A DNA stretch of 64,000 nucleotides from Ostrea edulis (taxonomy: Eukaryota), in the NCBI RefSeq assembly GCF_947568905.1, contig NC_079168.1:49290001-49354000 (forward strand), given 5' to 3'. Shown one piece after another: positions 537-25,912 of this stretch (position 1 is its first letter; each line of letters opens with the position of its first letter). A program made the position numbers and the translations under genes. The notes below the pieces were generated by a model that was not told the origin of the DNA, made no database searches, and saw only the letters and a program-made list of their open reading frames with translations.

Positions 537-626
537 CAGGTTATTTTTTGTTTTGGATACATTAGGGTCATCTGTACCTAATCGTTTGAGGTATATATCT
601 AAAGCTCTTTTATAATAATGTTCCAC
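537..626 (-). CDS. KLC: KLC duplicated exon, TPR4B-TPR5A, copy B ([30 protein letters not shown])
   Basis: Acceptor ttgcag|GTG, donor CTG|gtaaga, 90 nt, phase 0/0, open frame; paralogous to 1069-1158. Confidence 0.9.
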
Positions 627-3600
627 CTGCAAAAGCAATGGGTCACAACACCAAATCAAAATAAGGCATGCAGAAATAAAATTTTTGATCATGATAAAAA
701 ATATATAAATCATTGGTTCCCATCTGTGGTTCCTCCTTCTTGAGACTTTAATCAAAACTTTAATGAAGGGATTTTTTTTCTTTATGAAATTGTCATAAAA
801 TGTTAATAAATTCTTCAACATTTCATTTAATTAGTAATTGATTGTGAATAAATCATGAGAATCATTAGCTAAAAGCCAAGAGTCGGGGAAAACAAACTTC
901 TTGTAAGAAGATTGATGGAAAAATACGCACTAAAAGGTAAACTAAAATGGCATGCAAATACCAAACTGTAAAAATTCTCATGATTCCATTCTTCTGTATC
1001 AGAGTGAACCACAGACACAAACCAAAGTAAAACAAACACCCCCAGAGATTTCCGTGGACCAGTCTTACCAAGTTGTTTTTAGTTTTAGCAACATTAGGGT
1101 CATCTGGTCCCAATTTGGTTTCATATATTTCTAGAGCTCGCTGATAATATTGCTCAACCTGGACAGCATTTCAAAATACTTCAGTACAAACTCATGAGAA
1201 TTATTGTAATTATAAAATGTATATTCAAATCTTTAGCAGAAATTTTTATGCATCTGTTTTCTTGACCAATAATAAATATCATACAAGCATATACAACTAA
1301 AAATATTAACATACAGCTAGATTTCAAATTTATTTTTAGATTGCATATTAAATGTATAGAATTTTCAACCTATCTTACCTCTTCATATTTTCCTTGATTT
1401 TGACATAGTAAGGCTAAATTATTTAATTGCTTCGCAACATCTGGATGATCTTTTCCTAAAACCTGAAAGAAGATTTGAAGTGTTCATATTTTGTCTTTCT
1501 ATCTCAGCAATTTTATAATTATAAACATATTCACCTTTACTACCCACATTCACATGTACAGGTCAGAGATGATGCTAGTCTGAATAAAAATCTCAACAAA
1601 AGTACAAGATCAATTGTGGAAAGTTCTTGACCAAATTCAAAAGTCATAAATCTTCCTTCTTTGGTCAAATCTCAGAATATAATGTAATCCATAGTATGAG
1701 ACAAAATATAAATGTTTCATTAACCAAATAAATCGCTTTGTGGAAAAGTAAAAAATTGTAATGTTGAAAAAATGCTGAAATTCAATACACCCCAAAGAAC
1801 AAACCTTTTCTCTAATTTCTAATGCTCTTTTACAAAGAACAAACCTTTTCTCTAATTTCTAATGCTCTTTTACAAAGAACAAACCTTTTCTCTAATTTCT
1901 AATGCTCTTTTACATAGAACAAACCTTTTCTCTAATTTCTAATGCTCTTTTACAGAGAGGTTCTGCTTCTTTATATTTGCCTCTCTTGCCATATAGAACA
2001 GCTAAATTATTCAGTGTGGCTGCCACCTACAACAGAGTCAAATCATGAAGCAATCAATGTACACATAACAACTGAAAGCAACAGTTAAGTGTTAACGCAT
2101 GTCAATCCAGTAGTCCTGATAAACCAATTATGCTTTTGTTGATATATTGCTCTTTCACTGCATATACATCTGAGTAATACATAATGAAGTTTCTTGAATA
2201 CTAAATTTATGCAAAATTCAATATTGTTATGAATATCAATTAAACAATGAAATACAAGATATATGGCTTATTTCCACTTAGCCCCCTTCCTCCAATAAAA
2301 ATCAAACCAAACAAGAGGCCCACAGGCCTTATCAGTCACCCGAGTATTAGTTAAAAGTATCACTAGCCCCAAGGGCTATGAAATCTATAATAATTGTCCT
2401 GTTCTGCATATCTAAGCTAAATTCTAACATTCAGCAGCAGAAAAGAACAAGATATGTGTTATATTAACACTATATGACTATTTTGGACACGCCCTAGAGT
2501 GAGAACTCTGGGAGTTGCGAAATTCAATTTCAGTATATCCCTTTTCTGATTTTTATAAACAATTTTAGTAAAAGGCTACCTGCTCCTTCTAAATATCTAT
2601 TCAGTTTCAATTTAGTATCAATAGATGGTATTTAAATGTTTTTTGGTTGGTTTTTTTTTTACATAAAATATATACCAAGTTTGGCCCTGTCCTAGAGTCA
2701 GAACTTTTATCTAAGGGATCATGAAATTTACAATTTTAGTAGAGGCTTTCCTGTTTTACTCGACTATGTATCTAGTTTTTCTTACTGCGATTGCAGAGAA
2801 GAAGACTTTTGAAAATTGGCCCTTTTCTGCCAATTTTTGCCTTTTGGGGTGCAGGAGTCCTGATATATACAATTCATGTCCCTCTTGTCTCAAAGATGCT
2901 TCATACCAAATTTGAAAAGAATTGGAAGGGTAGTAATCAAGAAGTTAAAAATGTTCATGCACATTTCATCACTATGATCATTTTGGTCCCATCCTGGTAA
3001 CAAAAACCCTACCCCTGGGAATATAAATTCATAATTTTGGTAAGAGGCTAACTAATACCCATTCATTTTCAATTTAGTATGTAGAGCATCAAAGGTGTTA
3101 CTCAAATGTTTTACGTGTAAACACTCTATACCAGATTTAGCTACGCTCTGGAATCAGAACTTCTACCCCCGTCCCTGGAGATATTGAAATTTGTAATTCT
3201 ACAGACGCCTTCTGCTCTACATGACTATGCATTTGATTTTTTTCTTACAGATAAGCCACTGTATAGATGAAGATGTTTGAGAATTGGTATATTTTTGGCA
3301 GTTTTTGCCCCACCCCTAAGGCCCCAGAGTTGCAGGAATCCTGAAATTTACATTTTATGTCCCCTTTGTCCCAAAGATGCTTCATACCAATATGAAAAGA
3401 ATTGGAATGGAAGTTTAAAATGTTAGATGGTTAATGCATGATGAACGGCAACCAATAGCAATAGGTCACCTGATTCACTCAGGTGACACCCCCCTCCCCC
3501 CCAAATAGAACAGGGCTTGAAATAATTGTTATGGCTTTCATGGTGTGTGTGTGTGTGTGTGTGTGTTGCCATATGTATTTTAAGATTTACAATTTGAACC

Positions 3601-23850: not shown

Positions 23851-25912
23851 TCTGTAAGGAAAATCTAATATCTCGGACACTTGTTGTTTCTCGGACAAAA
23901 ATCCTCCATGATACAAGTCCTCCACAAAACTAGTCAAGTCCATTATTGTAAAGGGGTCCAAAGCTAAAGAAAGCTGCTTCAACAAGTGTCTATCCTAGTG
24001 AACATACTTCATTCCTGCCTCTAACCTCACAACAGAAATCTGGCTGTAAAGTCCACAATGACACCACTGCTTCAGATCAGAAACAACTATAATATAAAAG
24101 CATTATGCCCAGACGCAACCCCTTTCATTATTCAATATGGATTAATCCTGCACTATATACAATCAATATAGAAATTTCATTGGCTTTTCTTCCTCAGCAT
24201 GTTGAAATGAGGTATTGATTTTGGTGGCTATTGATCCAGGACTAGGTCTGATACATGCACTGATGTCATCCTTCTTCATAATTTATGAATACAACATCTC
24301 TTAATGAGAAAATAACTGTGTTCTAATTTTATTATCCATATTACAGATTCTAGTTAATAGTGTAATGAACTATTGTTCCGGATTGCCAATATATACTCCA
24401 TTTTATACTTTAACAGGGTTTTGTCTTTTCTTCTATAAACAGACGATTTCTAGCATTTTCCAGTCATATATTACCTGTATTTTATACTAATTTATCAATG
24501 AATTCTCTTTATAGTCCTGCAGAAAACTTCCAGAGTTGTAAAGTCACCATGTATGAGATGTTTCATTTATGCTTATGACAGGTTAATGAGTTTTGACATT
24601 CAGAGCTTTAATACTTTACAAAGGAGATAAAGTGACTGTGGAATAAGGTACCAAGAACAATATTAGTAAATGCTCCTCAATGTGTCATTTAAATGTTGAG
24701 ATCACAAACACAGCACATAATAACTTCACAGCCACTATCACAAATTGCAATATATTCAATGGTGTCTGTATAAACAGAATTATTTTTTCCATTGGGTGGG
24801 TACTCTAATACAAAGTATAATTTTATTTTTCTCAACAGGGATGTGCTAGGGGAAGCGGTGGGGGACACTACGACTAGCAAGAGCTTGTAAAGCAATAGGT
24901 TTGGAATTCATGTTTTACCCAATTAAAAATCTATTGACATTTTAATGACAAGAAATCTAGCTTTCCCTGACAAATGCATCGTCGCAAGGGTGAAATAGAA
25001 TGAAACAAGAACCTGTGGTTTGCGAGGATGTGACAAATGTTGCTAGCAGCAATTTAAACTAGCCTAGATGAAAATATGCTAACTGAATTAAAGGGGAAGG
25101 CACCCCCCTCCCCCCCAAAAAAAAACCATGATAAATGATAGGATTAATTATGTGATTAAATTATTAAACACTGTCATTTACGATATCAGTAAATAATACT
25201 TTATTCATAAAAGCAACAATGTGATTAGGATTGCCTTTCCCTTTCAGAAGTTTCAAAATTTACACCATATAATAATGTACATTTTAGTCTGAACACTTAG
25301 GCCCATGCAATGAGAGAATACAATGATAATAAAAATCCTTCTTGAAAGATGAGCAAGGTCTAGTTCAGAGACATGCAAAATATGAATAAAATGTTTTGCA
25401 GTGATCACTAATAATGTGGAAAATCAATCACACTAGGAAAAAACAAAAGGCCTATGGGCCACATCACTCACCTGATTCACCTTAAGCCTGCTATTGTGAT
25501 TTATACAAGTTTAAAAAAAAAATCTTTATTCCCAAGAAAGTTTTTGGCTCCATATTGTGGCTCTTACCTAGCCCAAAAGGGTAACAACATCAAAAGGTCA
25601 ACAAGAGGCCCATGGGTTACATCACTCACCTTAGCCACCTAGGCCCTGCCATTGTTCAAGGTCACAAGGTCAAACATCAAAGTATAAAAAAGGTCTTGCC
25701 ATAAAGAGTTTATATATAAAATATGAAAGCCCTACCTTAAATAATTCAAGAGATATTAAATAGGTCAGGGATTTTTTAAAAGTAGGTTAACCTTCAAGGT
25801 CAAAAGATCAAACATTGCATCACAAGGTCTTGCCATAAAGAATCTATAACGAACAAGAAATGTATGCATCCGTGATGCAAAATTGAAAAGGTTTATATAC
25901 ATGCATCATTTA

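Follow-up and report, generated by a model that had tools for sequence, protein, structure and literature searches.

The stretch of DNA considered here, 64,000 nucleotides (nt) of Ostrea edulis (NC_079168.1) without a single N, referred to below as the window and the source of all coordinates unless another locus is named, carries a kinesin light chain (KLC) gene on its minus strand. This gene contains two ancient tandem exon duplications, probably used as alternative pairs that vary the outer face of the TPR domain under Rbfox-type control. The gene occupies positions 537-23850 and continues past the left end of the window, whose edge cuts it and leaves the exons for TPR5, TPR6 and the C-terminal tail outside; the window represents the 5' two-thirds of a bivalve KLC gene. 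An earlier note on this DNA had placed two duplicated exon pairs in the TPR domain, and both are present, on the minus strand, at or close to where it had put them. In the following, L-labels denote loci or contigs from other genomes and X-labels denote sequencing runs. The exons on which the argument is built are these:

22068..22311, minus strand: E1, N-terminal heptad region with an internal ATG at 22286; its tgtag acceptor is kept in L012 and L013.
13602..13841, minus strand: E2, heptad repeat (the heavy-chain-binding part of KLC), with a match to 9pmb_C.
10474..10564, minus strand: E3, 91-nt linker exon encoding LGFPDDDDE, kept in L005, L006, L012, L013 and L015.
8273..8501, minus strand: E4, TPR1 and the first helix of TPR2, with PDB matches and 63/63 identity.
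7001..7088, minus strand: A1, upstream 88-nt copy, TPR2 helix alpha4, KLC1 residues 267-295, derived, with orthologues in 7 other loci.
6595..6682, minus strand: A2, downstream 88-nt copy, close to vertebrate KLC1, with an A2-E6 RNA joint.
1925..2026, minus strand: E6, first helix of TPR3 and helix alpha6, with 100% protein identity in all loci and RNA joints to A2 and E7.
1379..1462, minus strand: E7, first helix of TPR4 with the N343/N344 equivalents, and an E6-E7 RNA joint.
1069..1158, minus strand: B1, upstream 90-nt copy, TPR4 alpha8 and the start of TPR5, KLC1 residues 358-387, vertebrate-like, with an E7-B1 RNA joint.
537..626, minus strand: B2, downstream 90-nt copy, derived and more basic, with an RNA joint from the E7 donor.

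All KLC exons read from the sequence are flanked by AG acceptors and GT donors, and in-silico splicing of the window exons gives a product that is open over its whole length. E1 and E2 match residues 1-67 (E=7e-17) and 68-140 (E=3e-32) of 9pmb_C, the sole full-length KLC1 chain in the PDB, and E4 matches the KLC1 and KLC2 TPR chains deposited there with E values of about 1e-62, 63 of 63 residues being identical to mammalian KLC1. These matches make the assignment of the gene as a KLC, drawn from sequence, firm. The N-terminal heptad-repeat region responsible for heavy-chain binding is present in E1 and E2, and E3 encodes, ahead of the TPR domain, an LFP-acidic-like linker motif reading GFP instead of LFP. 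TPR1-4 and the start of TPR5 lie inside the window; TPR5 and TPR6 were seen in the orthologous loci L006 and L009. When the TPR1 exon was used for a profile search, the matches were all giant multi-TPR proteins, with no true KLC among them.

The members of pair A are both 88 nt long, have pyrimidine-rich AG acceptors and GTGAGT donors, share 74% of their nucleotides and differ in 4 of 29 residues, while those of pair B are both 90 nt long, with AG acceptors and GTAAGA donors, 72% nucleotide identity and 9 differing residues of 30. The introns between the copies measure 318 nt in pair A and 442 nt in pair B. An all-against-all comparison of the stop-free segments picked out exactly these two pairs, which lie far beyond chance.

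Relatives were found by searching a large protein collection with the genomic open reading frames around B2 and A1, the surrounding DNA being then read; in the matching frames from other genomes the exon is kept and the intron-derived flanks are unrelated. The order A1 then A2 was found in L001, L005, L006-8, L012, L013/14, L015 and L016, and the order B1 then B2 in L001/L009, L005, L006-8, L012 and L016; L013 stops just past B1, and L014 has a B2-like match at its extreme end. The recurrence of the duplicates in related species, which the earlier note had proposed to check, is borne out: at least six further bivalve genomes, that of Mytilus coruscus included, carry both pairs in the order seen here. 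The exon lengths of 88 and 90 nt are invariant and the splice sites are intact, the sole exception being A2 of L016, which has a stop and no donor. L016 comes from the M. coruscus assembly GCA_011752425.2 (order Mytilida), and L001/L009 stand near Mytilus, as shown by downstream exons almost identical to the M. coruscus protein and by a B2 that groups with the M. coruscus copy. A public M. coruscus gene model, P0171, joins A1 and B2.

Trees of the exon DNA separate by copy type and not by species, with support values of 84/92 for the division of A1 from A2 and 84/89 for that of B1 from B2. Together with the M. coruscus locus this indicates that the duplications are ancient, and both seem to predate the oyster-mussel split, within Pteriomorphia. 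Across species the mean proportion of synonymous differences (pS) is 0.59-0.85 (0.75 for A1), i.e., synonymous sites are near saturation, and the ratio of nonsynonymous to synonymous proportions (pN/pS) is 0.12 for A1, 0.03 for A2, 0.03 for B1 and 0.16 for B2, values that indicate purifying selection on all four exons. A2 and B1 are the vertebrate-like copies, and A1 and B2 are the derived ones, evolving four to five times faster and still strongly constrained.

Two of the loci deserve a separate comment. L016 (10440-10527) is an extra, partly decayed KLC copy in which A2 has acquired a stop and no longer has a donor, the other three exons of the pairs (A1, B1 and B2) being intact; residues of E6 and E7 that are otherwise invariant are altered in it, and no E1-E4 could be detected in the 10 kb upstream. 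In L018 (367-1060, Logan SRR33145367) a single A exon of mixed type (AANLLQDALAV) lies 505 nt before E6, which suggests that L018 may be an outgroup without the A duplication and that this duplication is not universal.

Exon use was followed in RNA contigs from four runs (X4, X5, X9 and X13) mapped on window positions 1095-7094, a stretch that ends inside B1; such contigs show that a form is present, can drop rare ones and give no quantities. As intron bins outside dispersed repeats had zero depth in the four runs, the contigs derive from spliced RNA, and the joints seen have GT..AG ends (CT..AC when the plus strand is read). The A2-E6 joint (6592/2023) occurs in X4, X5 and X13, the E6-E7 joint in all four runs, and the E7-B1 joint (1377/1156) in X4 and X13. 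The contigs of X5 and X9 depart from the window exactly at the E7 donor, and their next 30 letters equal window positions 595-624, a unique sequence adjoining the B2 acceptor; since this continuation is the 5' end of B2, E7 was spliced directly to B2 and B1 was skipped. The X5 contig, of 673 nt, also carries A2, E6 and E7, and X9 is a recorded RNA-Seq run without differences from the window.

The concern of the earlier note that only one exon of each pair might ever be transcribed is thereby removed for pair B, with E7-B1 in X4 and X13 and E7-B2 in X5 and X9, and the combinations A2+B1 and A2+B2 both exist in RNA. All sampled B2 words occur, complete, in four recorded RNA-Seq runs, X9-X12, and they also occur in several further runs guessed to be RNA; one RNA run that matches the window exactly carries the label 'mollusc metagenome'. 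In another species, the 1,138-nt transcript contig L017, which is 99.7-100% identical to L009, has B2 joined to the TPR5 exon and later exons and retains the intron before B2. The A1-E6 and A2-E6 junctions were not found in JGI metagenome contigs, where the A2 control was likewise unmatched. From its conservation, A1 is very likely to be used in RNA too.

Two segments of the A2-E6 intron, 2295-3494 and 5895-6294, showed very deep RNA-contig cover with many differences and odd joints. They are dispersed repeats or transposon fragments expressed from many loci.

The choice within each pair would be made in different ways. For pair A, in-silico splicing with both exons or with neither gives a frameshift and a stop within 6 codons, so at the protein level predicted mutual exclusivity holds by reading frame, and the out-of-frame products are presumably policed by nonsense-mediated decay. 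For pair B the choice would be made at the RNA level, E7 being joined either to B1 or, with B1 skipped, to B2. The 442-nt intron between B1 and B2 is too long for steric exclusion, and for the three introns that surround B1 and B2, duplex folding in the window and L006, which included no targeted covariation search, gave energies no better than those of shuffles; no steric, frame-based or RNA-pairing ground was found for the exclusivity of pair B.

A conserved element close to the pairs is UGCAUG, the recognition word of Rbfox. Rbfox/Fox-1 proteins control alternative and mutually exclusive exons through this word, egl-15 of C. elegans being an example, and their effect follows a position rule by which a downstream site usually enhances inclusion of an exon and an upstream site represses it. 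In the window the word, read as TGCATG, lies next to one exon of each pair:

6576..6581, minus strand: TGCATG 14 nt downstream of A2, with a second word at 6491-6496.
667..672, minus strand: TGCATG 46 nt upstream of B2, with another at 951-956.

TGCATG lies 14-16 nt downstream of A2 in five of eight genomes (window, L006, L015, L001 and L016) and 20-46 nt upstream of B2 in five of six (window, L006, L005, L001 and L016), against a background rate of 0.82 per kb; the shorter GCATG is found within 80 nt of A2 in seven of the eight, L005 and L012 among them. The words are conserved while the introns are otherwise diverged. This arrangement, downstream of A2 and upstream of B2, suggests Rbfox-type control favouring A2 and disfavouring B2, and exon choice would depend at least in part on such a factor. 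The oyster exons resemble known Rbfox-controlled exons in having a conserved UGCAUG close by, downstream of one exon and upstream of another; the resemblance lies in the motif and its conservation.

It is possible, if doubtful, that this control amounts to a coordinated tissue switch, in which an Rbfox-type factor promotes A2 and represses B2 so that the vertebrate-like A2+B1 form is made in nerve and muscle and other forms elsewhere. The placement of the words in several lineages and its agreement with the general position rule speak for such a switch, as does the distribution of pair B among the runs, X5 and X9 showing only B2 in the mapped stretch and X4 and X13 showing B1. The single X5 contig with both A2 and B2 speaks against it, because the use of A2 evidently does not force that of B1 and the A and B choices are not rigidly linked; moreover, the motif is lacking near B2 in L012 and near A2 in L013.

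To place the differences between the copies on the protein, residues were numbered by the KLC1 residues named in PMC6214655 (V305, K309, Y313, K340, N343, N344, L347, L348, N351 and R266), all ten of which land on the correct letters of the KLC1 sequence. Exon A then corresponds to residues 267-295 and exon B to 358-387. Sites were taken as fixed different when the two copies share no residue across species. In pair A these are 275 (G vs A), 279 (Q/H/L vs N), 283 (K/Y/S/I vs G) and 291, and in pair B they are 360, 363 (Q vs K/R/V), 370 (E vs L/K), 371 (S/T vs K), 375 (P vs T/M) and 381 (A vs S/I). A helical wheel puts the helix sites at 100-220 degrees from the hydrophobic face, i.e., on the solvent side of alpha4 and alpha8, and the remaining fixed-different sites fall in two loops. 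Alpha8 is on the outer surface of the domain and forms part of a nanobody epitope (PMC6214655). The derived copies A1 and B2 are the more basic ones, B2 turning a neutral/acidic stripe basic, and the A1+B2 protein of M. coruscus (P0171) aligns with 3NF1, a structure of the KLC1 TPR domain, over 180 residues and without gaps.

The peptide interface of the domain is formed by the first helices of TPR2-6, and its groove contacts are R266, N301, V305, K309, Y313, K340, N343/N344, L347, L348, N351 and N386 (PMC6214655). In the oyster gene these contacts lie in constitutive exons or are identical in both copies: the N343/N344/N386 equivalents are unchanged, and the R266 codon, which is split over the E4/A junction, encodes Arg with either copy. 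As the contact residues are unchanged and the differing sites are solvent-side, the modelled effect of the swap is to re-surface the exterior of the TPR domain and leave the groove untouched. The suggestion of the earlier note that the TPR groove itself is diversified by exon choice is not upheld, since the differences map to the outer faces of alpha4 and alpha8 and to loops. Each swap would keep the hydrophobic core and the groove-lining residues and exchange an exposed stripe on alpha4 (TPR2) or alpha8 (TPR4) together with the next loop. The isoforms would then differ in contacts of the convex or edge surface of the domain, and primary recognition of W-acidic and Y-acidic cargo peptides would be the same in all of them.

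Such a surface might act on the motor and coiled coil of the heavy chain when kinesin-1 is folded and self-inhibited, on other partners, or on how easily the domain closes. In the self-inhibited state a motor domain is reported to be locked by the repeat 2-5 helices of one TPR domain, and the second TPR domain to use its inter-helix turns for binding the coiled coils (PMC13371920). The motor contacts of TPR 2-5 make docking and self-inhibition a plausible target. A more specific proposal, which we regard as speculative and rather unlikely in its full form, is that two splice-selected patches on the convex face, neutral/acidic with A2/B1 and basic with A1/B2, set the docking of the light chain on the motor or coiled coil in self-inhibited kinesin-1, or the binding of an acidic partner or membrane; the activation threshold, and not cargo choice, would be tuned by tissue via an Rbfox-type factor.

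The alternative contained in the earlier note, that independent choice at three or more sites yields at least eight isoforms with differing grooves, one gene doing the job of vertebrate KLC1-4, is improbable. It draws on two alternative sites in the TPR domain that are real, with A2+B1 and A2+B2 both seen, on the secondary contacts of alpha4/alpha8 and the closure hinge at 353-358 abutting exon B (PMC6214655), and on the A381S/I change at the start of the first helix of TPR5. Against this, all contact residues named in PMC6214655 are the same in both copies, the differing sites point away from the hydrophobic core, and neither A1 (in the four runs) nor the optional insert described below was seen in RNA; that insert is limited to the window and one close relative, and the start exon, counted as a further site, is probably constitutive.

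Several points weigh against the reading preferred here, of alternative pairs with outer-face variation under Rbfox-type control. The outer-face placement is based on a helical-wheel calculation and published descriptions. A few second-helix residues, some of them in alpha4 and alpha8, make secondary contacts with the peptide, and residues 353-358, which adjoin exon B, are part of the closure hinge (PMC6214655), so indirect effects on peptide affinity are possible. Inclusion of both B1 and B2 stays in frame, and the RNA-mapped stretch ends inside B1. The gaps in UGCAUG near B2 of L012 and near A2 of L013 count here too, and the existence of both A2+B2 and A2+B1 means that a simple linked switch would not explain everything. 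Finally, A1 had no cover in the four runs, depth over 6895-7094 being zero in contigs that can drop rare forms. That A1 is a silent relic and pair B the sole working switch, as this absence beside an A2-E6 joint in three runs could be taken to mean, is very unlikely given that exact length, frame and both splice sites of A1 are kept in eight genomes with synonymous sites saturated (pS 0.75) and pN/pS at 0.12, that the decayed M. coruscus copy L016 has a broken A2 beside an intact A1, that the model P0171 uses A1, and that only four runs were mapped.

Tandem duplicated alternative exons are a well-known class of mechanism, and the exons are already included in automated annotation (the M. coruscus model P0171). 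The oyster pairs are like mutually exclusive tandem duplicated exons in that adjacent homologous copies of equal length and phase are ancient, each under purifying selection, and swapped, with pair A exclusive by frame. They differ from the known tandem-exon cases in the gene concerned and in the presence of two separate pairs in one repeat domain, and pair B, unlike known mutually exclusive exons, stays in frame if both copies are included. A survey of tandem duplicated exon substitutions in humans does not mention KLC in its main text, and no paper was found on alternative TPR exons in any KLC. The earlier note, which knew of no description of this arrangement, agrees with our search, in which no paper on it was found.

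Vertebrate KLC diversity comes from the paralogues KLC1-4 and from C-terminal splice forms of KLC1 (PMC8318374), and in this respect the background given in the earlier note is documented. The two solutions are alike in diversifying one motor subunit to widen or tune kinesin-1 function, whereas the vertebrate variation resides in whole genes and a disordered C-terminal tail and the bivalve variation within the folded TPR domain of a single gene. A second comparison is offered by the residue differences N343/S328 and N469/S454 between KLC1 and KLC2, which set selectivity for Y-acidic (JIP1) peptides (PMC6214655). Like the N343/S328 difference, the bivalve isoform differences include some in or near TPR4 of the same domain; the KLC1/KLC2 selectivity residues, however, lie on the groove-lining first helices and contact the peptide, while the bivalve differences fall in loops and on alpha4 and alpha8, which are second helices.

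Few cargo-binding modules in animals are as conserved as the TPR domain of KLC, whose TPR1 exon in the window is identical to the human protein, and work on this domain has centred on the concave groove. The retention of two versions of the exposed alpha4 and alpha8 faces since before the split of oysters and mussels, both Pteriomorphia, indicates that the outer surfaces may be functionally important as well. The exon copies also provide natural, fold-compatible variants for probing the structural claims of TPR 2-5 contact with the motor in the self-inhibited state, and the gene would be a clear case of diversification inside a folded domain of one gene, where vertebrates use paralogues and tail splicing.

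Three further elements of the gene lie outside the exon pairs:

10158..10247, minus strand: candidate 30-aa cassette of 90 nt, flanked by AG/GT sites and open in phase 1, located after the LFP-acidic motif and before TPR1.
23819..23850, minus strand: E0, candidate first coding exon with an ATG, 32 nt, donor GTAAGT, joining in frame to E1.
1793..1958, minus strand: 40-nt tandem repeat of 4.2 copies at the end and donor of E6, from a tandem-repeat scan.

The first of these was described in the earlier note as an optional 30-amino-acid insert before TPR1. An open exon with splice sites does exist, as the cassette is open in the phase left by E3 and has a tgtag acceptor and a GTGAGA donor, and its optionality is not evident from the sequence. 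In L006-8 its length and splice sites are kept, at 81% nucleotide identity compared with about 50% in the flanks, and protein identity is only 71% (window vs L006). The cassette was not found in L005, L012, L013 or L015, two of which have E3-E4 introns of 270-304 nt, and its words occurred in four large DNA-like runs only and in no RNA run. It is credible as a younger, lineage-restricted candidate exon.

The cassette contains DLYVE, patterned like the JIP1 Y-acidic core D-I-Y-L-E (PMC6214655). The L006 cassette reads DIYLG; the acidic residue at +2 is lost, which weakens the idea of a self-binding mimic. The same E3-E4 intron contains, at window positions 8700-9620, a unit of about 170 nt in several diverged direct copies; it was found by self-comparison and resembles a miniature inverted-repeat transposable element.

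E0 had been considered an optional start exon. The 32-nt exon with its ATG and GTAAGT donor is there, while its optionality is unsupported and an upstream start is probably the rule. E0 joins in frame to the acceptor at 22312/22311, which is 25 nt upstream of the ATG inside E1, and the peptide KKIEEIGK, encoded between that acceptor and the internal ATG, persists in L012 and L013, where the DNA differs by synonymous changes; this conservation at the protein level argues that the stretch is translated and that the start lies upstream. The upstream ATG exon E0 is thus most likely, as far as can be judged from sequence, an ordinary start and not an optional one. No RNA support was obtained for E0, and a pattern search found no E0-like start exon in L012 or L013.

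At the end of E6 the last 30 nt of the exon and the donor are tandemly repeated (98% match), an arrangement absent from L006. The extra E6 donors so created were considered as a source of isoforms and rejected, because their use would give a stop and the RNA contigs use the first donor only. A repeat of the same type, exon end plus donor, is present in another species and another exon: in L005 (273-554) a 103-nt unit of 2.7 copies comprises the 3' part of E3, with the LFP-acidic-like motif, and its donor. It is also worth adding that an extra intron interrupts the TPR1 exon E4 in one lineage, seen in L013 (8966-9339) and L019 (252-853), where E1 is split too; as the KLC gene is otherwise very conserved, such gains or losses of introns may help to place this lineage.

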